A stretch of DNA of 64,000 nt. It comes from Paraphysomonas bandaiensis (lineage: Eukaryota > Protista > Chrysophyceae). Of the stretch, positions 1,206-64,000 are shown piece after piece (position 1 is the stretch's first letter; each line of letters opens with the position of its first letter). The position numbers and the translations under genes are program-made. The stretch spans positions 1 through 64,000 of the forward strand of contig CBFFRP010000329.1 in the NCBI GenBank assembly GCA_965644295.1. The letters run 5' to 3'. The notes beneath the pieces were generated by a model that saw only the letters and a program-made list of their open reading frames with translations, was not told the origin of the DNA and ran no database searches.

Positions 1206-3014
1206 ATGCAAACTCCCGTTGGTAGGAGTAGCCCTAAGAGCCACTCTGGTTCTGAAGGCAGTGTTAAGGAGGATCTAGAGCCTTCAATGCTCGAAATCAT
1301 TCTTGCACGTTTCGATGCCTTGGAAAGGAAATTCGATACGAGAATAGATGACTTAACGTTCAGAGTCACGCGACTCGAAGAGCGAGCCTCACGTAGAGGT
1401 ACACCTGTCGGCTCTAGAGCGCCGAGCCCCACGATTTTAAGGGAAGATCAAAATATCCCAGGGGCAGATGAATCAGTTACGAAAGGAACACCTACTGTTC
1501 CTGACACGTTGCCGAAACCGGTAAAGAAACGTGATACAAGGAGATACTCTACTCTGCATAATTTAGCGGAGCACTATCGCACTCCTTGGCGGGATGAGTC
1601 TGTAAGAGAATTGTTGGAGGAGGAAGATACTTCTACTGCTCAGTCAAATGGCAATGCTGAGGAAGATGGTGATCAGCAGGTGGCTTCTGAATTCCCTACT
1701 AGAACTCAAGCTTTGTTAGGAGGCAAGAAACCTGGGAAGCTGTTCAGGGAATTGAAAAAGAATGCCAACCTTCCAAATGTGCAACAGACTGTTGTAATGC
1801 GTGAGGAAAGGACTTGCAAAGTTCGTATCAATGAACTAAAGCTTTCTAAAGTGGCTAGAGCTGTCAAACAAATCTTGGATTTTCAAGAAGAGGAACAGAC
1901 CACTGTGCGTCTACAAAAGGTTGTTTCTGGTGAACTAAGAGATCATCTAAGAGAAGTGTATCATCTCGGTCATGCGGAGATTTCAGAGATGGATTTGTCC
2001 GACCTACTGCGTGTAATAGCCAAGGAAACTCGGGTTTTTAATTGTGTGGGATTCTATGAGGAGCTACGAGATTCTCTTAGACACATAAAGATTATGGAGT
2101 GGAGGAAAGTGACAACTGTCACGTTCGAACAGTTTTACTTCCAACAGTTGAAACTTATTGATTTGTTTCGAACCATGTTATCCATAATGCTGGAGTTTAA
2201 TAAGGATTGGTGTCCCAGAGTAGATGACAAAGAATATGGGCTCGTAAGACTATTCAAAAACTTGAACGATAGGGATTATGTTCGTTATGTCTTTGGGTGC
2301 ATGAATAAACTACAGTTTGACACGATGAACGAGTTCTTTGATGAATTTACGGCCATTTTAGTAGATCATTATCAGATTTGCTTAGCAGCTCGTCAGTTAC
2401 CGTTTGAGGCTAACATTGAGGCTAAAAACAAACTTGATGAGTACAACAAACGGAAAAGGGATTTGTTTTCCAAGAATAATGAGAAACTTCCGTCTCCGAT
2501 GCGGTCTACTTCTTACAAGGACTATGATCATCGGAATAACAGAGATTCACATGCTCTCACTCACATTGATGGATATGTTTCTGATGATTCGGATTTTGAT
2601 CGAGGTCCGGAGCAGATAAATCTCGAATACCCTAGTTCTTCAGATGATGAAGAGGGTAACGTGGATTTACGTCGTGGCTCAGCCAAGGACGTTACTTCAT
2701 CGCAGGATCTGGAACCTGATCCTACAGCAGTTGTTAATGAGCAAGAGGTTTCTTTTATGGCTTCTTCTCAGGATAAACCTGCTGGTGATACGGGTTCGAG
2801 AGTTGAGAAATTCGGTTGCCTGAGGCAGATGTTGTATGGAAAATGCAACAAGCCACAGTGCAAATACAACCACAATTCTCAGTGCTTGAGAACCTCGGCT
2901 GTTGAGATGAGGGATAAGCTCAATGCTTTCCTGAAGGCTGAGGATGGTTCCACTGGTAGAACCAATCCAACTTCTATCTTGAGAAGGGATCGCTTCGGCG
3001 ATTCCCGACCTTGA
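1206..3014 (+). CDS. gag: Gag of element A, with N-terminal coiled coil and C-terminal CCCH zinc finger
   Basis: 602-aa ORF between LTR and pol; CLRQMLYGKCNKPQCKYNH. Confidence 0.88.
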   Translation: MQTPVGRSSPKSHSGSEGSVKEDLEPSMLEIILARFDALERKFDTRIDDLTFRVTRLEERASRRGTPVGSRAPSPTILREDQNIPGADESVTKGTPTVPDTLPKPVKKRDTRRYSTLHNLAEHYRTPWRDESVRELLEEEDTSTAQSNGNAEEDGDQQVASEFPTRTQALLGGKKPGKLFRELKKNANLPNVQQTVVMREERTCKVRINELKLSKVARAVKQILDFQEEEQTTVRLQKVVSGELRDHLREVYHLGHAEISEMDLSDLLRVIAKETRVFNCVGFYEELRDSLRHIKIMEWRKVTTVTFEQFYFQQLKLIDLFRTMLSIMLEFNKDWCPRVDDKEYGLVRLFKNLNDRDYVRYVFGCMNKLQFDTMNEFFDEFTAILVDHYQICLAARQLPFEANIEAKNKLDEYNKRKRDLFSKNNEKLPSPMRSTSYKDYDHRNNRDSHALTHIDGYVSDDSDFDRGPEQINLEYPSSSDDEEGNVDLRRGSAKDVTSSQDLEPDPTAVVNEQEVSFMASSQDKPAGDTGSRVEKFGCLRQMLYGKCNKPQCKYNHNSQCLRTSAVEMRDKLNAFLKAEDGSTGRTNPTSILRRDRFGDSRP

Positions 3015-6000
3015 TGGAAGGACCATTGCGTGCGGGGAGCGCAGGATGTCAGTGTAGTTAATGGGTGTGACGGGGATGACGATTGTTGCTTACAATTTGA
3101 AGAGTCTACATTCACGGCGGCATTGTGTTCTGTGCAAACCGAGGGGCAAGCTAAGCTGTATGCTTGTTTTCCTAGTACGCGAAAAATGACATCAGCACAT
3201 ACTGTAGCAAGGCTAATAATGAACAATAATTTGAGAGAGAATTCGGAAAAATTGATCACCGTACTTTGCGATACGGGAGCGCTTTCAGCCAACTACGTGT
3301 CTAGGGGTCTGGTTGAGAGTTTAATGCCAGAGCTAAACCCCGAATTTTTATACGATGCGAATCATAGAGTAGTATTGGCGGATAGTACTACTATAAAAAC
3401 AGTCACACAAGGAGTCAGACTCAATCTTTTGTTGGCTGACCCTTATGGAAAACAGTATCAGTTCAAAGGGGATTTCCTAATTATTGACATGAAACATAAT
3501 GATGTCATACTTGGATTGCCGGCACTTACTGGTACTTTGTATCCCTTTATGTGTGAATTGATGAGGCATGCTTTTGAACAAACATCTTATGAGATAGAAA
3601 GCGATACCAAGAAGATTTCGAGTCATGATTTGTCTGGCTTAGAGCATGGACAAATAGTGGAACCATGGTCTAAAGCGAGTACTCAAATTGCACCGGAGGA
3701 AGAGGATTCCGAATTGCCGGTTCAATTTAAAGAAGCTTTGGTATTCTTAGGAAAGACTAGAGCGGAAGCTTTGAAAGACTATGAGCAGTTGTTGGAGACC
3801 CATGTTAGTAGTGAGATGAAGGAACAAACAAATGTGATGCATCTCCTACGAACTAAAGCGGTTAAAGTCTTTGTACCAGATGAGTGGTCTGGTGTAAAGG
3901 GTGTTGAACCTTTAAAAATTAAGTGGAAAGATACACTTCCGGATCGGATCAAACCCAAAGCGAGGCCTATTAACCCGAAGCTATGGGAAGCATCAGAGAA
4001 AGAATTTCGTCGTCTGTGTGGGTATTTTTACCGGAAGAGTAGATCGCCATGGGCTTCTTGCCTTGTAGTAGCGCCCAAGGCTACACCTCCTTACATTCGA
4101 TTTTGTGGGGACTACGTTAAGATAAATGATCATATGCATGTGGGAAACTACACTATTCCCAATGTCAAACATGAACTTGACAAGATCATTAATTTTCCAT
4201 ATTATTTGGATATAGATCTTACAAATGCGTTTCATCAAATACCTTTGGATGAGGAAACTTCCGAGAAATTGTCCATTCAAACGCCATGGGGACAGTTTGC
4301 ACCTAATTTCATGCCAGAGGGTATAGCACCTGCTACTGGTGTACTGCAAGAGGTTGTTCGGGAGATATTTGCTGATTTTTCAGACTGGGCCATCGTCATT
4401 TTTGATAATATGCTAATACTAGCCAACGATCCCCAGGATGCTTATGAAAAGTTGGAACGAGTTATTGACAGATGTCTGGAGAGAAACATAAAGTTGAAAA
4501 TGGCTAAGAGCTGGCTTGGTTTTAAAAAGGTTAATTTTTTTGGATATGTGTGCAAACACAAATCGTATGAAGTGTGTCCGGATAAAAAGGAAGCGCTGGC
4601 AAACATACCCATGCCATCATCGACTAAACAAGCTAGATCTCTGCTAGGCAAGGGAGTTTTCTTTTCCAGCTTCACGCCAAAGTACTCTGACTTAGTAGGT
4701 CATCTAACGGACCTCACCAAGAAATCTTTCAATTGGAATAAATCTACTTGGCGTCATGATTATGAAGCTGAGTACAAACGTTTCATAAAAGGTTTACAAG
4801 ATGCTTGTGAGCTCTTCTACCCTGATTATGAGTTAGAGTGGATTTTACGGACTGATGCAAGTGAGCTAGGTATAGGTTCTGTACTACTACAACGGAAGAT
4901 ATTACCGTCAGGAGAAGCTCAATTGCAACCTATTGCCTTTATCTCTAAAAAGTTTTCAGAGCAAGCAATGAAATGGGCTACTATAGAGCAGGAGGGCTAT
5001 GGTATCTACTATTCGGTTAAACAGCTAGCGTATTACTTAGTTGGAAAGCAGTTTACAATAGAAACAGACCATAACAATTTGCTCTGGATGGAAGCGTCTG
5101 AGGTACCAAAAATTGTTAGATGGAGAATATTCTTGCAATCATTCAATTTTAAAATCCGACATATTTCGGGAGCACAGAATTGGTTAGCAGACTGGTTATC
5201 CAGGGAACACCAACTGGCTTATCTGTCGGGCATGTTCTTGGATGATTCTATGTGGGATGATGCCTATTTTCTGGGAGAGGACTGTCAGGATTCTGAGTAT
5301 TTCTCATTCCTAGGAAATTTTATGGACCCGTCGGATCTCAGTGACCAAGAACAACCTTCCATGAATATATCTCGTGAGGAATGCTTGCGTGAGGTACACA
5401 ACTCTCGCGTGGGTCATCTTGGAGGGAAAGCTACTTGGATTCGTCTCAATAAACGTTTTCCAGGGCATGGAATACCATATCAGGTGGTAGCAGAATATAT
5501 ATCCAACTGTCCAACTTGCGTAAAAACCCGGTTAGCCATGAAGGAAGCACTTATTCCCATAGTGCGCAACCTAAAACCACCGGGGGCTCGCAGTGCTATT
5601 GGAATTGATGCAGTGGAGATTACTCCACATGGCAAGGACGGTTACACTCATATCAATGTGATAGTGAACCTTCACACAAAGCTCGTTTTTCTGGAACCAG
5701 TAAAAGGAGTAACGGCTTTGAATTTAGCGAATACTGTGTGGAAGTATTGGTCCTATTACGGTCACACGGATGTCGTGATTTCAGACCAGGGTCCGGATTT
5801 AACTTCGGATCTATTCCAACAGCTAACGGAATACATGGGAATGCGCCATACGTTCAGTATAGCCAACCGGCATGCGAATGGCTCAGAACGTATCATAGGT
5901 GAGGTAGTACGTCACCTACGAGCTCTAGTATATGATGCTAGCGAGCGTCAAGAGCGCACAGATGTTTTTGAAGATCCTAGCTGGATCGCCAGTGTCCAAC

Positions 6001-7001
6001 ACATTCTTAACTCTGAAGTGTCATCTGAGACGGGTTTCTCACCATTCGAGTTGACTTTTGGATCGGAGGATAAGCGTTATTTTAACGTGGACACCGACTC
6101 TCTTTCCCAGGATGCGCATGCACGACTTAAACGTTTTAATGATAACCTTCGTGAGCTCAGGGCAGCTTCGCATGCTTATCAACAGCGTCTTGTGCAAGAG
6201 CGGGCTAGCCAAGGTATACCGGCCGACAAGCAGAACAGATATCAGCCGGGAGATCTTGTTTTGTTCGACAAGGGTGCTAAAGTACATCCTAAGATGTCTC
6301 ACCGTTATATGGGTCCTTTCAAAGTCATATCTCAATATAAAAATGACATTGATTGCAGACATTTGGTGACAGGACAAGTTGTGAAAGTCGATGTGCGGGA
6401 GGTTAAACTTTTTGCGGGTGATCAAGACACAGCGTATAACATGGCTTGTAGAGACCATGAACAGCATGTGATTGACACGATTCTATACTACAGAGGTGAT
6501 AGAGACACCAGAACCTCTCTAGTTTTCACTGTGAAATTTCAGGATGGTGATGTTCGTGACATTCCATTCAGTAAGGATATTTTTGACTCTATTCCATATG
6601 CCGATTTCTGTTCTAAGAAAAGATATTTATATCATCTTATTTATCCGGTTAAAGAGGCAAAGGAATATATTGCAAAAATCCGTAAGCAGCCTATCACTAG
6701 TTTTCAGCCAGGTGATGAGGCTTATGTTGACTTAAGAGTTTTCGGGGACCTGTGGTATGAAAGCCTGGAGTTACCGGATTCTCATTTTATTACTTATGTT
6801 GCACGTTTTGTCTTCACACATTGGTATCATAAAAGTTCCAAACGGATACTCTCAACTAAAAATGTGATGACTAAACAAACTTTCCGACTTGATAATTACC
6901 ATATCCATTGTTTTGCCCATAAAGATTTTGATTCTTCTACAATGGTCTTGGTAGACGAGGAATTTGCCAGCAAATTTCCACAAGTTAATCAGTCGGTATA
7001 A
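3015..7001 (+). CDS. pol: Pol of element A (protease, RT, RNase H, integrase, GPF, degenerate chromodomain), in frame with gag after one TGA
   Basis: LCDTGA (PR); DIDLTNAFHQI and IFDN (RT); TDAS/EQE/TDHNNL/ADWLSR (RH); H-H-CPTC plus IGID/SDQG/SERII (INT); YMGPF; VIDTILYYRG...FTVKF. Confidence 0.96.
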   Translation, partial: WKDHCVRGAQDVSVVNGCDGDDDCCLQFEESTFTAALCSVQTEGQAKLYACFPSTRKMTSAHTVARLIMNNNLRENSEKLITVLCDTGALSANYVSRGLVESLMPELNPEFLYDANHRVVLADSTTIKTVTQGVRLNLLLADPYGKQYQFKGDFLIIDMKHNDVILGLPALTGTLYPFMCELMRHAFEQTSYEIESDTKKISSHDLSGLEHGQIVEPWSKASTQIAPEEEDSELPVQFKEALVFLGKTRAEALKDYEQLLETHVSSEMKEQTNVMHLLRTKAVKVFVPDEWSGVKGVEPLKIKWKDTLPDRIKPKARPINPKLWEASEKEFRRLCGYFYRKSRSPWASCLVVAPKATPPYIRFCGDYVKINDHMHVGNYTIPNVKHELDKIINFPYYLDIDLTNAFHQIPLDEETSEKLSIQTPWGQFAPNFMPEGIAPATGVLQEVVREIFADFSDWAIVIFDNMLILANDPQDAYEKLERVIDRCLERNIKLKMAKSWLGFKKVNFFGYVCKHKSYEVCPDKKEALANIPMPSSTKQARSLLGKGVFFSSFTPKYSDLVGHLTDLTKKSFNWNKSTWRHDYEAEYKRFIKGLQDACELFYPDYELEWILRTDASELGIGSVLLQRKILPSGEAQLQPIAFISKKFSEQAMKWATIEQEGYGIYYSVKQLAYYLVGKQFTIETDHNNLLWMEASEVPKIVRWRIFLQSFNFKIRHISGAQNWLADWLSREHQLAYLSGMFLDDSMWDDAYFLGEDCQDSEYFSFLGNFMDPSDLSDQEQPSMNISREECLREVHNSRVGHLGGKATWIRLNKRFPGHGIPYQVVAEYISNCPTCVKTRLAMKEALIPIVRNLKPPGARSAIGIDAVEITPHGKDGYTHINVIVNLHTKLVFLEPVKGVTALNLANTVWKYWSYYGHTDVVISDQGPDLTSDLFQQLTEYMGMRHTFSIANRHANGSERIIGEVVRHLRALVYDASERQERTDVFEDPSWIASVQHILNSEVSSETGFSPFELTFGSEDKRYFNVDTDSLSQDAHARLKRFNDNLRELRAASHAYQQRLVQERASQGIPADKQNRYQPGDLVLFDKGAKVHPKMSHRYMGPFKVISQYKNDIDCRHLVTGQVVKVDVREVKLFAGDQDTAYNMACRDHEQHVIDTILYYRGDRDTRTSLVFTVKFQDGDVRDIPFSKDIFDSIPYADFCSKKRYLYHLIYPVKEAKEYIAKIRKQPITSFQPGDEAYVDLRVFGDLWYESLELPDSHFITYVARFVFTHWYHKSSKRILSTKNVMTKQTFRLDNYHIHCFAHKDFDSSTMVLVDEEFASKFPQVNQSV

Positions 7002-9665: not shown

Positions 9666-12124
9666 AGCCCATCTTTCGCATCAGTCTTCTGTAGCAATGG
9701 TGTCATATCGTCTCTTCCACTGCTATTATCACACGTCTTTGCTGCATTGTTCATTGCGTCTATTATGAGCTGTGTTGTTCGCATCTTTACCCAGTTAGTT
9801 CTTCTAATTCTCTTCTGTGTCTTGATATTGAAGAATACCCAACTACCGTTAGCATTGCCAGTAGGATACAATGCTATGCATGGCTCCGTACGATCCTGCT
9901 CGGCATTATTACTCCTCACCTTAGGATTGTAGCACTCCACGTAGTCTCCGAATGCCATATCTAGTTCCTTTCTGTAGTTCGGCTTTCTCCCAGTGAAAGC
10001 TACTCGTGGAGCGACGATGGAATGACTTGTCGATGGTCTTCTCAGATTCATGCGACTGTTGGCATATTTCACTAAGTCTTCCACGTTCGCATTAGGCAAT
10101 TTCCACGGTAGACCTGCATTCACACTTCTTATGATCTCCTTCAGCCTTCTTATCTTGCTATCGACCCTATCCATATGATCTCCAGCACCGCTGATGTCTA
10201 TCTCCACCCCTGTAATCTTTCCTCGCAGTGGTTGAAATCCCGGCTGTGGATCCAGGTATGCTATCTTCGGTGTAAATCCATGGCTGCGCAATAGACTCAC
10301 TTGCTCTTGCAGAGCTAGTCCAAGATCGTCTGTTCTCTCACTCGGTAGCGCCGCCACCAAAGTTAGTCCAAGAGGCTCCGACAATGTGATCATGAAAGGT
10401 TGCTTCCTCACATAGAATAAGTCCGTATATAACCGCTGACTCTTTTGCTGCGACGCCTTCAATTCAATATCCACGTGCTGTCTGCGTACCTTCTTTTTGG
10501 TGTGTTTTCCTCTGATAGCCTCACACGGTTTGCCTTATATATCGAACGACCTTCTGATATCATTTGCAGTCAGCTGCACCCCTGTGATGTTGCCGTCACT
10601 CACGAGGTTTATCGCGTCTTGTTCTGAGTCAAAACCAGAATTGCGTATTAGTTCTCGAGCTTCTCTCGCCCTAGCAACTTCGCCTCTTGTGTATTTTTGT
10701 TCTTCCATGCTTGTTGTTGTAACATTAACATTGCCTTCTGCCCAGTCTCTCATATCAGCTACATACATTTTGTTCCGCCTTCTGAACACTAGTTCTTTGT
10801 TTTGTAGATACACAGTGTACGATACACCCGGTTCATAAGCCACTGGATACATATCTTCCACATCGGCCTGGCATAATACACTCACACTTAGGTCTTCAGC
10901 CGTCTTACACGTGAAGAAATGATCCAGCTCTCCCACGTCCGGTAGTTCTACGGCGTGTCCAGATAGACCGGCTACCGTGCACTTTCTGCTTGCTGGCCTC
11001 ACGTCCTTCAGCAACCACGGGTGTACAACTGATACGTCCGCCTGGTTGTCTAGAAGCACCTCGTACCACTCAAAACGCTCACCGCTCGATGCATATGCGT
11101 TCATTGTTGTGACCGAGCACTGTTTTTCCTCCGGCTCTACATTATCGGGACAATCACTCAGTTTGTGTCCGGGCTCTCCACAACCCCAGCACACCACGGG
11201 TTTCCTCGGCCTATTACCGCGACGTCTCGGCTCCTGGTCATCATTGGCCTTCTGTTTTCTGTCCATTTCACTCGCACGCCTTTGCTTGGTGGATTGTTCC
11301 TTCTGGCTGACAAATGCTACTCCACCATTCGATTTTGCTCCTCTCCTCGGGGTAAGATACTTCGATGCTTTAGTGTAGATATCGTTGACGTGCTCAGGTG
11401 GCTTCTGCGTGCCCATCATCAGATCATTTAGATAATTTGTCTTGAATTCCCCATAACGGGCATCATCCAATCCCCTAAAGAAATCCATGGCTATGTCCTC
11501 ATCATCCAGTCTCGGATTGTCGGCGTCATTGTACGCATCTAATAGGAAATCGAATCTCTCCTTGTAGCCCACTATGCTCTCGAAGGGACCTTGTTTTGCG
11601 TCTTGATATTTCTTCCTAGTCTCTGCACGGACGACCGCTTCGACATTTGAGCTCGTTGCTGACTTATGAGTCTCCTTTACAGCCAACCACAGCAGCAGAG
11701 GGTCCTTGGTCGAGTTGATTTTGTCGTATTCTGGTGTGAGCTTTATTGCGTCAATTGATTCATTGCTCAGATGATTGTAGATGAATGCATAGAAAGCAGT
11801 CCGATTCGCCTTCATTTCATTAATCAATTTCGCCCTTGCCTTCCTGGCATCCTTCATATCTTCAGCGTTAAATCCGTGGGGGTCGTTTTTTAAGTTATAT
11901 TCTGCAGGGTTTACACGCGGCGGTTCATAGTACTTGTCCAGTTCGATTAGCCTTGCCAGGTCTCCATATCTCTCCATTCCCTCGGCCACAAGCTTCTGCT
12001 TGAACGTCGCCAAGTTGGTATTGGCACCATATTTCAGTATTGGCACAGACGTGGACGCACTGTTGCTCGCCGAACCCCTAGCCCTTTGTTCAAATCGCTT
12101 CTGAAACTTCTTGTTGGATCTCAT
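9666..12124 (-). pseudogene. Copia gag-pol with an in-frame nonsense codon at 10535-10537, truncated after integrase
   Basis: ORFs 10535-12124 and 9641-10474 share a frame; ...FDI*GKPCEAIRGK looks like DIYGKP with TAY>TAA. Confidence 0.85.
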
Positions 12125-56186: not shown

Positions 56187-57529
56187 GGCTTGCTATTGGG
56201 AAGCTTTCGAAGGGCATATTCTGATACAATTGGGTTTAAAATCGTAGCGGCAGATATAATAGGTGCTATTAGATTGCACAGTTTGTTTGTCTACACTCTT
56301 AATTGTAACCACAATAATTTGTTCACACTGTGATGTATTATTACTACAGTTGTCACCGACCAGGAGGGGGGCGATACTACCATAGATCGCAAAATTATCA
56401 TAAGATTTCATACATGTCAGACTATTGTGATTATTCATAGCATAATTTGTACGAGATACTGTATTAGCATGTAGCTGGTATATAATAGACGACCACTTTC
56501 TACAGCTGTTCACTACTATTGTTAAAGGCTTCAACTTGAAGCCAACAAGTATTGGTCAGTTCTGCCTGTTGAGTTCTGTAGTATGATGCGATATATAATA
56601 TATATAGTAGTGAATGATCCTCCACCTACTAGTAATGTGCCCCCAACGGCTGTTGCCGCTTTACCAGGCTTTGATATTATTACATCTTTCTCTGCCCTAC
56701 GGTGGCAAATACCGTTCAACACAAAGTTTCACCTTATTAACCAGCTTTAAGCTCAATGTCCCTATTAAGGGTATGGATGAGTCATGTCAGTGTGCCTAGG
56801 GCCTCTTCTCCCTCTCTTCGGCCACATTTTGCTGATCACCTCGTCTCCGACAAATCTCTTGTTTTACCACGTTGTACACGTTCCAAGCCTCACTGCCTGG
56901 CTTTGCGACTTCCACCCAACCTAACGGCTTCGGCTAAACCACGTGCCTGCACTAATGCAGCGCTTACCGCATTCATATGCCATCACATCAGTAGACATCA
57001 TAGTCTCACCTATCGAATTCTACGGTTACAACCACTCAAAACGTGGCTCGTGCGAGCAGGTCCACGCAAAAGATCCTCTGGTGCTCTCCATATGGTCACA
57101 GAATACTCTCGAACCCTCACAACTGAGCTACAGGGCTGCCTCCTGATGTCCACACAAAACAACCCAACATGGTTTCTCTGTGGTCTATGCATCCAGCAGG
57201 TTACCCCCTCATTCTGTTCACCTATCACTCCCTCAGCCCATTCCTCTTATTGGACAGACACTGTATTCCGCATACGGTATATTCGGCTACTGTACTACAG
57301 TGCCCTACAGGATGTATACCACACAAAAACGGTGCTAGCATGCGGTACACTACGTAGCCCCGGACCCCATCAATACCCTACCAACACACACCCACTCAAT
57401 CTTGCTGGTTATGAGTATATCACCTATGCAAGGCCCCAAAGTTCACGCTTAAGTCTCTTGCGCAACAACACTCGGTTCACATACAGATATACACCAACAC
57501 TCTCTAGAAGCAACTTCGACACAATTTCA

Positions 57530-59296
57530 ATGAAACGTGAAACAAATTCCAACACTTCCAGAACCTTCACTCCAAAGTTTGTTCTTCCCCCCTCCTATCA
57601 ACCAACCAACATTGATGCGCAGATCAAAAATGCTATCAGAGAACAGAAGAAAGCCAAAGCTGACACTCCCCAGCTAGAGCTCCCATCGGTACGCACCTTT
57701 CTGGGATGGGAAAATGACCTACCTGTGGGAGAGTACAAAACACTCGTCCTTACAAACATAAAAGCTGCTGATGATGCCACCTTCCTGGGGATAACACACT
57801 ACCTTATCCATGAGTTGGGGTTTCCCATTCAACCCCCTACCCCCCAAGACATCGCTACCTTCAGGGCAGCCAAGGATGCACGAACGTGTTCAGACTTACC
57901 CGCTCCCACAGCGAGTAGGGTAGTCCGAGCGTTCGACCTAGGCAGACCTGGGTACGAAGTCCGACAGGGCATGGGAGCGAATGTTACCGCTGACTCATGT
58001 ATGTACTCCTCCCCTCTATGCTTTGACCTCCATGTAGAAACGGGCACATCAGTCGATGACAAAGGCCTCCTTCGGACCGAACGCCGACATGTCCAGATAT
58101 CACTTTTCCGAACGCCACGAGAACTCTTCGTGGGTCGCACCAAGGATGAGCCCTCGCTGATACCAGTGGCGGCTATATATGGGCTACATGCAGACTCAGC
58201 GCACACCAGACCTGCACATGCCTTTAGGTTACGAAACACGCTGGATATGCTTCTCCGAACGGGAGGTTTCCCCACGCCACCTCTATACGAAGTATTCTGG
58301 ACTCTAACACACTATAGAGGCAAGACTCGAGCCACTGATAAAACATATAGGTTCTATCAGATTCTATTACTCCACGATCCCATTCACGATCAGGATCTAA
58401 GAGCTAAATTCTATAAAGCACTCTTCAATAATGAAATAGGAGGACATGTCGAAATCAACCTCGGCTCACTCTGTTGTAGAATGGTCAGCACTGAAACACC
58501 CACGCAAAAGCAGTCCAACTGGACACCGTCTCAAGAACTCTTCCGCATCGCTGTCTGCTCTGAAACACTCCTATCTCCCATCCAAGTCTGACAAGCCTGT
58601 GAGGCTATAGGTATCCCATCCACGGACATAGAGGACATCATTTGGACCGCCCGCAACCCACTCACAAGCGGGCGCAAAGAAAAAGAACGCTTAGTTGAAC
58701 AAACCTACATTTACCTGGACGACAGGAATACCAAGATCAAACTCTGTTGGGAAATCTCACGCACAGGTATCGTGCCTTTACTGCGCAAAGCTCTGGGTGA
58801 CGAAACTCTAAGGCTTCTCTATCACACCATAGCAGTCCCCCCTGGCCTCCCTACTCAGCGGTTTCTATACGGCCTCCATAAGGCCACAGACACAGCAACA
58901 AACGCCCCTCCCATAATACCGCCTCCAACGTCCCTTCAACCCTTCGGTCCAACTGTTGCTCCACAAATGCAGACCGATACACCGCGATCGTACACTCCCA
59001 AACGACAGCGACAGATGGACACATCCCCATCAACAGAGCCAGCACCAGCTCCCACCTGCCCAGAGCTCTGCGAAATAGCTCTACACATCGCTTCAGATCT
59101 TGTACCTCTGTCAAAAATCCATGCCATCCTCGCGCAAATGGAAAACGCGGTTGCAGCTCTCTATGAGATCGATGCTGGGGCGACTCTCACGGTACTTGAT
59201 TACTATAAAAACAAGGTAGATCACAGTATCCCAGAAAGGTCCTCAGAAGAACACTCTCGGGTGGACTCGGACATCTTCGGCTCCGACTCCAACTGA
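57530..59296 (+). CDS. ORF1-like protein of the LINE-like element, with one in-frame TGA at 58589-58591
   Basis: ORFs 56756-58591 and 58772-59296 share a frame that stays open across the TGA; ATG 57530 chosen by inference. Confidence 0.55.
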
Positions 59297-59443
59297 CTCC
59301 TACTGGACTGGGACACAACGAACATCAAACGTACACTCATAGAAGTGTCCGCAGCTGCTCACACGTGGTTATCCCCCAGTCCACACTTACATATCCATAG
59401 TTGGCCCTCACCTGACACAACGACCTTCGCCTGTAGCACCCAC

Positions 59444-61888
59444 ATGCGTCCACCACGTAAACCGCCAGACAAACAGTCGAGATCCACCAGTGTACATCCC
59501 ACGAAAAGGCACCAAGGACCGCACTTTTCCTGTGATAATAGTGGTGATGGACCACGAAAACGGCCGGCCTCGACACAACGTAAGCGAAACAACCTCCGGC
59601 GGCTCAGTCGCAAACGAACTCTGCAACAATTTCGTGAAGGAACAATCCAGTCCCTCCCTCCACACATACAACGTCAACAGACACGAAACAAGCTCCGCAT
59701 CCGTGCCCACAACAAGCAAGCATGGCGAGAGCATTTACAACACCTGGCACAACAGTGTGTAGACACACACAACATCGTGACCACTCCTATACCTGACACA
59801 GCACCCACAGCTGTTACAGCACCCCCCCGTCCAGAAGACTCCACACATACTATTTGCCTCCCTCCGCCCACAGTGGAGGACGAACAAGAGAGAACAATCA
59901 CTGACACAAGTGTACTGCCTCAACTATTTGTGCCGCACCCTCTGCCAGCTGCCTTCACGGACCCCGGACTGCAGAATTGGTCCTTCTACTCGCCCAGCGG
60001 TCTGTTAGCCATTGCCATACACGAAGAGGTGGTTCACAGTGTCATGTCCATGCTACAATCGAGGCACGCTTTAGAACGCATAGAACAGCACCTCAGATGT
60101 TCGCTTGAGGAGGGGAAAATGCTGGTTGCACGTCACTACACACACACAGAATACAACAACACACCAATGGAGGGCTTCTGCGGACTAGCTGCTATTGCCG
60201 CAATATACCACAAACAACCGGAGGAGGACCACTACCCGTATTTAAATCCCGATGATCCAGCCTCGAAAGCAAAACTGCTCCAAGTCATTCAGACAAGCAG
60301 GACGGTACTTAGTACCTACACGCTCGCTGAAGCCAAGATGCTTAACTTTGCATGCATCCGGAAGAAGCTCCGACAGCAGCTAACAACGTACAACAAAGCA
60401 CTACGCCGCAAACGACCAACTGCTGTCGGAATACCCCCAGAGCAATGGGGCTACACAGACATCATAGCCCTCCTGGCAGAAACCCTGAGTATACGAATTC
60501 GTATCTGGCAAGATTCACCAGTGGACCTTGGCCACAACTGGGCGTACTGGTCTACCCACCATTCCTCCTTCCTTCCACAAACTCAATTCCTTCCATCTTA
60601 TGATGTGTTTTGCTCCAACGACCACTTCTTCCTGGACACCAAATACCCGGTGGAGTTGGAACTACACGCGCTACTCGAGAGAATTCCTGACCTCGTCATC
60701 ATGCGTCTCCAAAATGTGTTGCAATATCATTCCAAGGGAATGCAAGGAGTACATCGTGCCAGGTCCATCAACCATCCCTCCCACGCCCTTCAGGGGAAGG
60801 AATTCTCTTCCGATAACAGCGGTGACGGACCCAGCAAATCCACCCACACATTACCCTTACCCACTAAGGATGCCACCACACCGTATGCAACTCTATTTGA
60901 CTATTTCCCAGTCAAACGGAGGCCACCTACCACCAACCCTACTCAACTGAACACCATGGGAACTCCAGCATTAGCCCCAGACGGCCCATCCTCACACTCC
61001 ACTACCACTCCTGACATCAGGCCGGATGCACTGCCCAAGGACATTGCCACACACCCCCGACACTACACAGAGGGCTGGGGTCACACGCCCTTTCACTCCG
61101 ATCTGCTGATGAACAACTGGGTTAGATATGATGAAACCCAAACCATTGCTGCCTCCCCACAGGGAAACCTTTTAAAAGAAATATATGCACACATGCTATC
61201 CCCTGCCTGTACAGACATATGGGAAGGATTCATAGCCAAGGCTTCCAGGACGGACAACTATGATCTCATGATATCATTCACGCTACCAGAGCACAAATTG
61301 GATACCACGCACAGCGCCCTACTAGTTGCCCAGCATCTCGCGAATGGCAACAAACCCTGGGCAGACTCCACTCATGTTGTATCTAGGCATGTGCGGACCC
61401 TTTGCCTGACAAAGGGTATTCCCTCAACAGCCACTGTTAGTCTCCGTAAGACACTCATGCAATATGAATCCTCGACTCCACACACAGGACTACATCTAGA
61501 CACGGAGGATTTCCAACTGCTACTCGATCTTCTCTCCATACCATACAGACTATGGGACGCTGTTCAACCGCACCTGGCGCCTGGTTGGGCACAGCTGTCA
61601 CCATTCTCCAGACAGGCACTAACAGTGCACGCTTCTACCAACACTGTGGTAACCCATGACATCATACGCAGCCAGCATGGGTTTCACATACTCAATGCAA
61701 CAAATATCCCCACCTGCATCATGCACGCTCTAACACGGACTCAGGAGCGGCTATCCTGTTTTCTACAACACCAGACCTCCAGACAGAGCACCAATATCCT
61801 CTGGACTTCTGAGCCGTCAACTGTACCACCTATGCTACATGAGCACAGAGAGCAACAGGAACAGAGGGAAGTAATTGCAGTCTCCTAA
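59444..61888 (+). CDS. ORF2 N-terminal part: OTU-like protease plus a degenerate OTU-like repeat
   Basis: MRPPRKPPD start; TPMEGFCGLAAIA...WGYTDIIALLAETLSIRIRIW...VFCSNDHFF. Confidence 0.7.
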   Translation: MRPPRKPPDKQSRSTSVHPTKRHQGPHFSCDNSGDGPRKRPASTQRKRNNLRRLSRKRTLQQFREGTIQSLPPHIQRQQTRNKLRIRAHNKQAWREHLQHLAQQCVDTHNIVTTPIPDTAPTAVTAPPRPEDSTHTICLPPPTVEDEQERTITDTSVLPQLFVPHPLPAAFTDPGLQNWSFYSPSGLLAIAIHEEVVHSVMSMLQSRHALERIEQHLRCSLEEGKMLVARHYTHTEYNNTPMEGFCGLAAIAAIYHKQPEEDHYPYLNPDDPASKAKLLQVIQTSRTVLSTYTLAEAKMLNFACIRKKLRQQLTTYNKALRRKRPTAVGIPPEQWGYTDIIALLAETLSIRIRIWQDSPVDLGHNWAYWSTHHSSFLPQTQFLPSYDVFCSNDHFFLDTKYPVELELHALLERIPDLVIMRLQNVLQYHSKGMQGVHRARSINHPSHALQGKEFSSDNSGDGPSKSTHTLPLPTKDATTPYATLFDYFPVKRRPPTTNPTQLNTMGTPALAPDGPSSHSTTTPDIRPDALPKDIATHPRHYTEGWGHTPFHSDLLMNNWVRYDETQTIAASPQGNLLKEIYAHMLSPACTDIWEGFIAKASRTDNYDLMISFTLPEHKLDTTHSALLVAQHLANGNKPWADSTHVVSRHVRTLCLTKGIPSTATVSLRKTLMQYESSTPHTGLHLDTEDFQLLLDLLSIPYRLWDAVQPHLAPGWAQLSPFSRQALTVHASTNTVVTHDIIRSQHGFHILNATNIPTCIMHALTRTQERLSCFLQHQTSRQSTNILWTSEPSTVPPMLHEHREQQEQREVIAVS

Positions 61889-62210
61889 GGAGTAATTCAG
61901 TAATTGATGATAACTGCAAAATGAAAAAAGAAATTAACCGTTTGCGTTTCTTGCAATCGTAAGTTTAATGAGTATTGTCTATTGTATTTTGCATGCAGCA
62001 ATAACAATAAAGTAATAAACATGTTAAGAACCTAAAAACAGCTTGATAATATTACCTTACTTTTATCAACATTCAAGCTGCTGTATAACTTTTCTTAAAA
62101 TATGTATATTCAACTAGAAATCATTAATGAAAATATTTGGGAAAAATTTTTTCCCAAGTTTGAAAATAGTTTGCTTCTTGTCACCGAGAGCTCGACGTCA
62201 ACTACCACAG

Positions 62211-64000
62211 ATGAACCCCACGGACCGTCGACAACTCAGGCTCCATATGTGCGACATGAGCAGAGTCTACCGCCTCACCCTCAGACCCTCAGCCCTTCGC
62301 ACACAACAACATATCCCTAGTGATGGGTACTGCGCATACAGCACACTCTATCATCTGCACATTCTTGCTTCAAGCAGGCGACACACTCGCTCCTGTCTGA
62401 AATTAGACCTCAAACAACGCAAGGACCGTCACACGCTAGCATCTTTCATAAATACATTAGGCACCCAAGCGTTCGACATAATGCAACGGGAGTGCATGGC
62501 CCATCACACACTTCAGCCACTACGACATAAGTTAGATCACGCACAGGCCGCACTTTTAATACCTACTAAAACAACATACACTACGGAAGACGACATAACT
62601 CACTGGCTCTCAGTGCGAGAAGTCCACCTTTTAGCCTCTACTATCAACCCCTGCACGACGTGGGCGCAAAATGGTAATTACCTCAGCATTGTAGGCATCC
62701 CTACTGACAAAGTAGCTTATAACATCGCATGGAAGGTGGACGAACTTAGGGACGCTATTCGTGATAACTACTACCATGTCATACTACAAGATGCTCACTA
62801 CTTCCTCTTAGACCCTGCCGGTCTTTCTACTGCCCTAGACAACGCCCTACTATCTCTTGAAAACACCTTGGCCACCAGTATACTCTCAACGGCTGACCCC
62901 ATCGCTCCACCTACACTCCCCGCGGACTCAATCACGAACAACAATAGGACATCAAAGATGACCAGCACCAGAACAACCTCGTCAAGCAGCACCAAGTTAG
63001 CACGAACAAATCGACAGATTCTGCAGGCTTCAACCCCTGGAGCACTACCATCGCACAAGAAGATGCAGTTGAAACACGCCCAAACTGCGTTGACAAGTCG
63101 ATGCCAGCCAACCCGGAAAGCCAAAAAGGTCGTAAATTACGATGAAAGTGACCAACCAACGAACCTTCACAACTCACACCCAACCACGACCACACGAACG
63201 ATCAGACCAACTCCAGCACTAGATACCACCGGCTGGGACAGGGACTGGTCAAGAAAGTTCTACATTGCGTACGCCGATAACACTGCCAAAGGACTATCCC
63301 TTTATGCGAAGAACACATTCCCAGCAGACGTCATCATTGCTGAGTACAAAGGCAAACGCTATCCACTAACAAAGATGAGTCAGTCTACAAGGCGTTCTGA
63401 TTACATAGTTCAAGACAGTACTGGTACCTTCGCAATAGATGGCTTTGACCAAGTCCGACAATGTGTAACATGCGAAGCTGGGTATATTAATGACCCCCTA
63501 GCCACAAATATGGCTAATGTCAAGTTTGTCACGAAAAATAAACGCCTCTATGTCCGTACAATACGTTCCATTGCTAAGGATGAAGAACTTCTCATCAACT
63601 ACGGACATCATTATTGGTGTGATCAACGCTGGCCACTTGAGATATTAATCCAAGCCAGGGCTGCGTACGACAGCGACATAGGCGGTGCCAATATAGCAGT
63701 ATGGGACAGACTCCTTGCAGACAAGAGTGGAACTCCTACAGAGACCTCCAGCAGCATCCCCAAGGATCCCTCGGGAGCAGCCATGGGACTCCGACTCTCC
63801 ACATGGAACACAAATGGCAATCCGGCATCACACACAGGTAAAGCCCAAGCTATCATCCGACACTTTAAGCGGCAAAAATTGGACGTGCTCCTATTACAGG
63901 ATGTCCGTCTAACAGAAACTCAGGCCAACTTCTTCACGCGTATCATCGAAGATGCACTCCAGGGAACAAGAATATGCCTCTTCCTCAGCAAGCAGCCAAA
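62211..64000 (+). CDS. ORF2 continuation: OTU-like domain, SET domain and APE endonuclease N-terminus (open to window end)
   Basis: Hand translation finds no stop from 62211 to 64000: IPSDGYCAYSTL...WLSVREVHLLAS...ILQDAHYF; KGLSLYAK...IAEYKG...AIDG...GYINDP...NVKF...LYVRTIRSIAKDEELLINYGHHYW; LRLSTWNTNG...LLLQDVR. Confidence 0.88.
   Translation, partial: MNPTDRRQLRLHMCDMSRVYRLTLRPSALRTQQHIPSDGYCAYSTLYHLHILASSRRHTRSCLKLDLKQRKDRHTLASFINTLGTQAFDIMQRECMAHHTLQPLRHKLDHAQAALLIPTKTTYTTEDDITHWLSVREVHLLASTINPCTTWAQNGNYLSIVGIPTDKVAYNIAWKVDELRDAIRDNYYHVILQDAHYFLLDPAGLSTALDNALLSLENTLATSILSTADPIAPPTLPADSITNNNRTSKMTSTRTTSSSSTKLARTNRQILQASTPGALPSHKKMQLKHAQTALTSRCQPTRKAKKVVNYDESDQPTNLHNSHPTTTTRTIRPTPALDTTGWDRDWSRKFYIAYADNTAKGLSLYAKNTFPADVIIAEYKGKRYPLTKMSQSTRRSDYIVQDSTGTFAIDGFDQVRQCVTCEAGYINDPLATNMANVKFVTKNKRLYVRTIRSIAKDEELLINYGHHYWCDQRWPLEILIQARAAYDSDIGGANIAVWDRLLADKSGTPTETSSSIPKDPSGAAMGLRLSTWNTNGNPASHTGKAQAIIRHFKRQKLDVLLLQDVRLTETQANFFTRIIEDALQGTRICLFLSKQP

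Follow-up and report, generated by a model that had tools for sequence, protein, structure and literature searches.

A probable SET lysine methyltransferase domain fused to the endonuclease of a large LINE in Paraphysomonas bandaiensis

Can a retrotransposon carry its own protein-lysine methyltransferase to the chromatin into which it inserts? The question is raised by the right-hand end of a 64,000-nucleotide stretch of the chrysophyte Paraphysomonas bandaiensis (GenBank assembly GCA_965644295.1, contig CBFFRP010000329.1, positions 1 to 64,000 of the forward strand; hereafter the window), where a preliminary description, made from the letters alone, had read one open frame at 62211–64000 with an OTU-like domain, a compact SET domain and the start of an AP-endonuclease (APE), and had proposed a long interspersed nuclear element (LINE)-like retrotransposon encoding its own SET methyltransferase. 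We found that this forward-strand frame translates to 596 stop-free codons and that Pfam recognizes in it SET followed by the APE start; it is missing from the list of open reading frames (ORFs) because it runs past the window end. We favor, at a probability of roughly 60%, the reading that this end of the window is occupied by one damaged copy of a SET-bearing LINE whose SET is a working methyltransferase carried to the chromatin of the integration site.

We asked first whether the element is a LINE at all. The 1.8-kb stretch 62211–64000 was found at least 40 times in the assembly (eukaryotic; 62.5 Mb in 669 contigs) at 97–100% identity. The 5′ end of the element is fixed at window position 56684, a boundary common to at least 12 copies; target-site duplications of ~11 and ~10 bp enclose two full copies; 5′-truncated copies begin at the window-equivalent positions 57811, 61230 and 61751; and a comparison of the two element ends revealed no similarity, neither a direct nor an inverted repeat, and hence neither long terminal repeats (LTRs) nor terminal inverted repeats. 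The common 5′ end, the target-site duplications, the 5′ truncations and the lack of terminal repeats together are the signature of target-primed reverse transcription. Pfam, run on the element ORFs, gave only SET, APE and reverse transcriptase (RT), with no Rep/helicase domain. The element is an autonomous APE-type non-LTR retrotransposon of ~12.35 kb, young, recently active and multi-copy, and the LINE assignment of the preliminary description thus stands, as does its expectation of an RT, rather than a Rep/helicase context, downstream. What it had hoped to read past position 64000 was borne out for the APE motifs GDFN and SRIDH, the RT and the target-site duplications, and failed for the 3′ tail: all four 3′ ends examined stop at ...CATTCACTACT without an A-run, and neither a poly(A) nor a simple-repeat tail was found. 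Several LINE groups lack poly(A), and a missing tail does not exclude LINE membership.

The contig breaks off within the element and many of its copies are found where a contig ends, as might be expected of an artefact, be it a mis-assembly, a LINE lodged in a SET gene of the host, or part of an element with Rep/helicase, such as a Helentron, mistaken for a retrotransposon. However, the junctions are the same at 40 or more sites, whose flanks differ and which show target-site duplications, independent metagenome assemblies repeat the same domain order (see below), and no Rep/helicase was found in the element ORFs by Pfam; we consider such an artefact hardly credible. A telomere-associated element, suggested by the shared orientation of the many copies that sit at contig ends, was ruled out in its own right, as the contigs merely break inside the repeat.

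The copy in the window is itself damaged by a 292-bp foreign insertion, a private stop codon and a contig break. The insertion, which lies within ORF2 (Table 1), brings a stop codon and a frameshift that split this ORF in the window copy; the inserted repeat has at least 13 separate copies elsewhere (83–100% identity), the duplication at its insertion measures 1 bp at most, and both DNA contigs and contigs from RNA libraries connect 61884 straight to 62177. An intron was considered and ruled out, by the non-GT-AG boundaries of the segment and by its being an independent dispersed repeat. When the 292 bases are taken out, 62211 falls in frame with the ORF that follows 59296, and therefore the frame 62211–64000 continues one ORF2. 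On this point the preliminary description, which treated the frame as an ORF from 62211, has to be corrected: in every other copy examined, the ORF that opens after 59296 runs on into this frame. The private stop, a TGA at 58589–58591, truncates ORF1 of the window copy, where two other copies have a sense codon. Finally, the contig ends at 65059 through an assembly break inside the repeat, in the APE-to-RT spacer just beyond the APE domain.

What lies beyond that break is shown by a copy on another contig (C352), which contains SET, linker, APE, RT, RNase H-like motifs, Cys/His knuckle and stop. In intact copies ORF2 is one frame of ~3,150 amino acids (aa) in which three OTU-fold modules, one of them degenerate and two with Cys/His, are followed by SET, the ~60-aa linker, APE, RT, the RNase H-like region and the Cys/His knuckle. 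The peptide LRLSTWNTNG...LLLQDVRL, which starts at 63789, is the N-terminus of the Exo_endo_phos domain, its match beginning at aa 531 of the 62211–64000 frame; truncation of the domain by the window end leaves this match weak (E 0.047), and in the full copy it reaches E 7.4e-10 with the motifs STWNTNG, LLQDV, GDFN, SRIDH and FDHRPV, such that the APE start proposed at this position, about 60 aa after SET, is now seen as part of a complete domain. The RT of the full copy matches RVT_1 (E 5e-15), contains a FADD box (ISFADDLN) and has human L1 ORF2p as its best PDB match (1.4e-8). The ORF2 stop is followed by a 243-nt 3′ untranslated region ending ...CACTACT, without poly(A). The region between RT and knuckle is termed RNase H-like solely through its homology to the metagenome relative P0166 (hhalign E 2e-45), which has a sub-threshold Pfam RNase_H match; the region itself gave no Pfam match and no PDB profile match, and hhalign against true RNase H aligned the TDGSY motif only.

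Is the SET domain genuine, and could it be active? Pfam SET matched the window frame at E 3e-9 (37.7 bits vs. a cut-off of 22.4) and the SET of a diverged LINE family of the same genome (family C, below) at 55 bits, the PR-domain model being a weaker second match; the Pfam core falls within the 63258–63617 that had been assigned to a compact SET by hand translation. The flanks contain no Cys clusters on either side, which makes the SET compact. Its profile matched the PDB entries of MLL3 (2e-11), PRDM12, LegAS4, SETD7 (2e-9), EZH2, KMT5A and vSET (1e-7). Its AlphaFold2 (AF2) model (pLDDT 87.5) adopted a SET fold with SET7/9 as the top Foldseek match (E 6e-8, TMq 0.66–0.69), followed by SETD8, MLL3 and PR domains, and with 365 PDB matches at E≤1e-3. 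Giant-virus and other viral SETs are no closer to the element SET than cellular ones. An exhaustive search of 1.84 billion representative proteins returned 238 matches to the SET at E≤1e-3, the best of them 39% identical, and a word-based search for long proteins with the same SET found nothing.

In an alignment of 34 related sequences, no variation is seen at N93 (the Asn of the NH motif), N102, Y130 (the Tyr of EELxxxY), Y134 and W135; conservation is 90% or higher at G27, Y45 and G47; and the GxG-like and EYxG motifs are nearly invariant. ND or NE stands in place of NH throughout, the element reading IND for NHS, with this IND placed opposite INH of MLL3 by hidden Markov model alignment; the substitution is constant across the subfamily and is therefore a subfamily trait rather than decay. 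The intact pseudoknot Tyr, the change of NH to ND and the absence of pre- and post-SET zinc noted in the preliminary description thus all hold, and hold beyond the window copy. Judged by its sequence, the domain is a distinct compact SET subfamily (IND for NHS, no zinc clusters), and profiles, model and invariant residues indicate that it is a genuine SET domain and probably an active S-adenosylmethionine (SAM)-dependent lysine methyltransferase.

The same motifs bear on the alternative that the SET is a non-catalytic chromatin or peptide binder, comparable to the chromodomain of chromoviruses, which tethers ORF2p or an integrase and steers integration. Such a role would be in line with the His-to-Asp change in the NH motif and the likeness to PR domains, and the position of the SET, beside the APE and in other elements beside integrase (below), mirrors that of targeting domains. 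On the contrary, the invariant columns include cofactor and catalytic residues (N93, Y130) and not just structural ones, ND/NE is constant in this subfamily, whose SAM-site motifs are all otherwise intact, and the few insertion sites examined had no obvious common target. We regard a purely tethering SET as quite improbable.

When all six frames of the genome were searched with the SET peptide, the domain was recovered in family A, to which the window copy belongs (93–100% identity), family B (68%) and family C (~50%), in open frames of up to 3,731 aa, and Pfam found SET-APE-RT in each of these three diverged LINE families. Between families, synonymous sites are saturated (pS 0.64–0.80, with SET pN of 0.16–0.36), which makes dN/dS unreliable, and amino acid conservation was instead compared across domains. 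SET is as conserved as the APE (SET 69%, APE 74% and RT 74% identity for A vs. B; 49%, 49% and 53% for A vs. C1; and 73%, 77% and 84% for C1 vs. C2). Since SET identity matches APE identity while synonymous sites are saturated, the SET is, on the evidence of these alignments, under purifying selection as strong as that on the APE. In the tree, the LINE SETs group in one clade (99/95 support), as would be the case if the domain had been acquired once, ahead of the divergence of the families, and the phylogeny indicates that SET is vertically inherited through at least three diverged LINE families. As a separate observation, ORF2 of family C1 contains upstream of module 1 a partial second SET-like stretch (aa 601–644, L026:3914-4045; C-terminal half only, iE 5e-4) that is absent in family A.

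These comparisons leave little room for the SET as a transduced host exon, a decaying passenger without a role. LINEs can acquire host sequence, and the SET has no close host or database relative (39% identity at best), both of which are compatible with such an origin; however, it stands in frame in dozens of copies, in three synonymously saturated families and in metagenome relatives, with conservation equal to that of the APE. We consider the passenger explanation very improbable. The possibility raised with the preliminary description, a SET confined to one copy and evolving neutrally, is likewise contradicted: SET is in every copy and is as constrained as the endonuclease.

The arrangement recurs outside this genome and outside LINEs. 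An APE-RT search recovered two relatives from other metagenome assemblies: P0163, with OTU-like modules 2 and 3, SET and APE and with RT in the next called gene, and P0165 (2,472 aa, 35% identity), with SET-APE-RT and no detectable OTU-like modules. Independent assemblies thus repeat the domain order of the element. Two further metagenome polyproteins, P0025 (L035) and P0044, of 3,500–3,900 aa, have the order RNase H-APE(weak)-RT-SET-OTU-Ulp1, with strong Pfam matches for OTU and Ulp1, which implies that SET and ubiquitin-like proteases recur in APE/RT elements in more than one arrangement. In the same genome as the window, at least four Ty3/gypsy-type families (L030 on C476, L033 on C339, L034 on C654 and L038 on C210; one family with at least nine copies of a 1,526-aa pol) contain a SET of the same subtype between RNase H and integrase (RT-RNase H-SET-integrase). 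The gypsy SETs share the ND subtype, are 25–37% identical to the LINE SET and form a clade of their own.

In both classes, then, the SET adjoins the enzyme that acts on target DNA, APE in one and integrase in the other, and from this position, our main argument, we infer a role at the integration site. We propose that the SET would act as a SAM-dependent protein-lysine methyltransferase; that, fused to endonuclease and RT, it would travel with the ribonucleoprotein (RNP) to the chromatin being nicked; that its substrate there would be a chromatin protein, such as a histone tail, at the integration site or near it; and that this methylation would either help target-primed reverse transcription, through access or repair, or establish chromatin in which the new copy is shielded from silencing. 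The OTU-fold modules might cut the polyprotein or strip ubiquitin-like modifiers. In its broadest form, which we put forward tentatively and think somewhat doubtful, the proposal would be that marine-protist LINEs and Ty3/gypsy elements recruited an IND-type SET beside their integration enzyme and write a histone-lysine mark at their own insertion sites, which guides integration or pre-empts silencing, with OTU and Ulp1 stripping ubiquitin-like marks.

An active SET need not have a histone as its substrate. It could instead methylate the element’s own ORF1p or ORF2p, or a host restriction, repair or RNA-binding factor, and so regulate RNP assembly, stability or nuclear entry. The closest solved folds, SET7/9 and SETD8, have many non-histone substrates, the domain is compact, without histone-tail-reading accessory domains or zinc clusters, and its catalytic residues are conserved. 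A chromatin role is a better fit, however, to a SET that adjoins a chromatin-DNA enzyme (APE or integrase) in two unrelated retroelement classes, and MLL3, EZH2 and vSET, all of them histone enzymes, are among its profile matches; we therefore judge a non-histone substrate unlikely. Several further points count against a methyltransferase delivered to integration-site chromatin. Asp stands in for the His of the NH motif, and the runner-up in Pfam is the PR domain, a group in which weak or inactive enzymes are common; SET7/9, the nearest structural neighbor, methylates mostly non-histone proteins; the Glu of the APE ‘QE’ motif is replaced by Asp (QD); the SET may be cleaved off rather than remain attached to APE-RT; and the RNA evidence consists of assembled metatranscriptome contigs that possibly contain DNA.

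We next consider the region upstream of SET, which holds three paralogous OTU-like modules (Table 1). By sequence, none matched the Pfam OTU family (PF02338) at E≤1; the module profile matched no PDB OTU, and hhalign of a module against true OTU domains aligned only the Cys motif, at a probability of 2.8%. The AF2 model of module 3 (pLDDT 77.7) was matched by VIA-align to OTU proteases throughout the top 50, the best being nairovirus vOTUs (Z 7.9, a value to be read with care, as Z<8 can reflect a common arrangement; rmsd 3.6 over 138 aligned aa), with Foldseek E of only 0.05–0.5. The OTU-like domain of the preliminary description thus has in its favor a predicted fold at this borderline score and the Cys/His motifs, and finds no backing in sequence profiles; the model makes it likely, short of proof, that the modules are OTU proteases. 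We also observed a motif, QGxx[FY]xSD[NDS]SGDGP, at 59534–59551 and 60812–60829, ahead of modules 1 and 2, that is conserved in all LINE families and may be a cleavage or docking site.

ORF1 precedes this long polyprotein in the same frame. The TGA that separates the two ORFs (59294–59296) is kept in other copies, and family C has the same ORF1-TGA-ORF2 layout; the ORF1 sequences of these two families, A and C, are homologous to each other (E 8e-11). The in-frame stop suggests read-through or reinitiation. A single in-frame stop is also seen in family C (TGA, L026:2111-2113) and in a SET-bearing gypsy element (L038:3156-3158), in the latter between an upstream 1,051-aa ORF and pol; this layout, common to LINE families A and C and gypsy, may reflect a shared read-through strategy. 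ORF1 matched no Pfam family. Its language-model neighbors were DUF3435, NDC10_II, DUF3504 and phage-integrase/tyrosine-recombinase SAM-like clusters, with scores of 0.87 or below, a weak lead to a DNA-binding fold unlike the usual LINE ORF1 proteins.

The element also leaves traces beyond its full copies. In contigs from several runs, the 3′ tail of the element follows immediately on 60840 or 61411, and the sub-part 60537–61411 has 10–30x the word depth of the remaining element; the joins and the raised depth suggest internally deleted, high-copy non-autonomous derivatives. Marine and seawater metagenomes contain 72–80% of the element’s sampled words, and polyA marine metatranscriptome contigs contain pieces of it at 95–99% identity, including the insert-free junction, SET parts (63187–63383 and 63275–63537) and the APE start. 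These pieces are compatible with transcription and no proof of it, as assembled metatranscriptome contigs can contain DNA. For the host, the clusters nearest to one of its proteins, of RING-TPM type, came from green algae and diatoms and point no further than to alga-like protists.

Table 1. Positions, in window coordinates, of the parts of the LINE copy and, in the last three rows, of other retrotransposon-like and repetitive stretches.
Feature	Position	Strand	Remarks
LINE copy, 5′ end to window end	56684..64000	+	
ORF1	56756..59296	+	846 codons in other copies; ends at the conserved TGA, in frame with ORF2
ORF2, N-terminal part with OTU-like modules 1 and 2	59297..61885	+	no Pfam match
OTU-like module 1	59942-60688	+	EGFCG...NDHFFL
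OTU-like module 2, degenerate	61052-61732	+	Cys lost in 3/4 families
Insertion of an unrelated small dispersed AT-rich repeat, 292 bp	61886..62177	.	private to the window copy; flanks abut in all other LINE copies examined
OTU-like module 3	62229..62849	+	SDGYCAYSTL...DAHYFLL, conserved in all four family representatives
SET domain (Pfam core)	63291..63605	+	PF00856, aa 361-465; folded unit 63213-63680
SET-APE linker, ~60 aa	63606..63788	+	poorly conserved, 29-43% aa identity between families
AP-endonuclease N-terminus (STWNTNG, LLQDV)	63789..64000	+	domain extends beyond window
Retrotransposon-like ORFs	1206-7001	+	gag-like ORF of 602 aa and pol-like ORF of 1,323 aa, judged by eye
Gag-like ORF with CCHC knuckle	10535-12124	-	judged by eye
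Long tandem array	32240-34042		MYVC... repeat in translation; GC skew 0.62, GC 0.33

How does this element compare with known systems? By domain order, rather than by an RT tree, it resembles the APE-type LINEs with RNase H (L1, I and Tad-like groups) in having APE, then a FADD RT, an RNase H-like region and a C-terminal Cys/His knuckle; it also shares with APE-type LINEs the succession of ORF1 and ORF2, variable target-site duplications, 5′ truncation and the lack of terminal repeats. It differs from usual LINEs in being about twice their size, in having ORF1 and ORF2 in the same frame with one conserved TGA between them, in the ~1,390 residues that three OTU-fold modules and SET add ahead of the APE, in lacking a poly(A) tail and in its QD, rather than QE, APE motif.

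Its SET shares with SET7/9 (SETD7), SETD8, PR domains, chlorovirus vSET and giant-virus SETs the compact fold without pre- or post-SET zinc clusters, and with SET7/9 also the C-terminal EELxxxYG motif; however, it is only 17–24% identical to them, has IND for NHS and an invariant YW after the catalytic Tyr, and is embedded in a 3,000-aa polyprotein. The OTU-fold modules resemble nairovirus vOTUs and the OTUs of transposons, where OTU and Ulp1 domains occur in Ginger1, Helitron and Mutator elements (PMC2836005), in their predicted papain-like OTU fold with Cys/His motifs within a mobile-element or viral polyprotein, and differ from them in having no Pfam OTU match and in being three in tandem, highly diverged, one of them without the Cys.

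Methyltransferases have been captured by retroelements before. DNA methyltransferase (DNMT)-bearing retrotransposons are found in dinoflagellates and charophytes (PMC5890265), and LTR elements with an adenine methyltransferase are also described (bioRxiv 10.64898/2026.05.21.726589); there as here, the polyprotein acquired a methyltransferase that is kept under selection, and such acquisition recurs across element classes. Those enzymes methylate DNA, whereas the domain described here is of the protein-lysine (SET) type, in a LINE, and fused to the endonuclease. The proto-Helentron of Phytophthora infestans and animal Helentrons combine an APE-type endonuclease with a SET gene and/or an OTU-like protease (PMC4067079). 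Helentrons, however, are DNA transposons of the rolling-circle type that encode Rep/helicase, and they have SET in a small ORF of its own, similar to Clr4, whereas our element has an RT, no Rep/helicase, and a SET fused in frame upstream of the APE. In the full-text papers searched (Repbase and Dfam lay outside this search), we found no description of a LINE or a gypsy/LTR element with SET, nor of OTU modules in LINEs; SET and OTU appeared there only in Helentrons and proto-Helentrons (PMC4067079), and OTU and Ulp1 only in DNA transposons (PMC2836005).

Transposons are usually viewed as the targets of histone methylation and not as its authors. If our reading is true, a selected SET beside an integration enzyme would extend the idea of elements that carry their own epigenetic writer from DNA methylation to histone or protein lysine methylation. 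It would also provide an experimental handle on chromatin editing at insertion sites, as a single domain is open to a substrate assay and to mutation in a retrotransposition test, and, with a young multi-copy family whose pieces are present in marine metatranscriptomes, the material needed should be at hand. The known architecture of LINEs is also broadened by the giant size of ORF2, by the stop that separates it in frame from ORF1 and by the OTU-fold modules in tandem.

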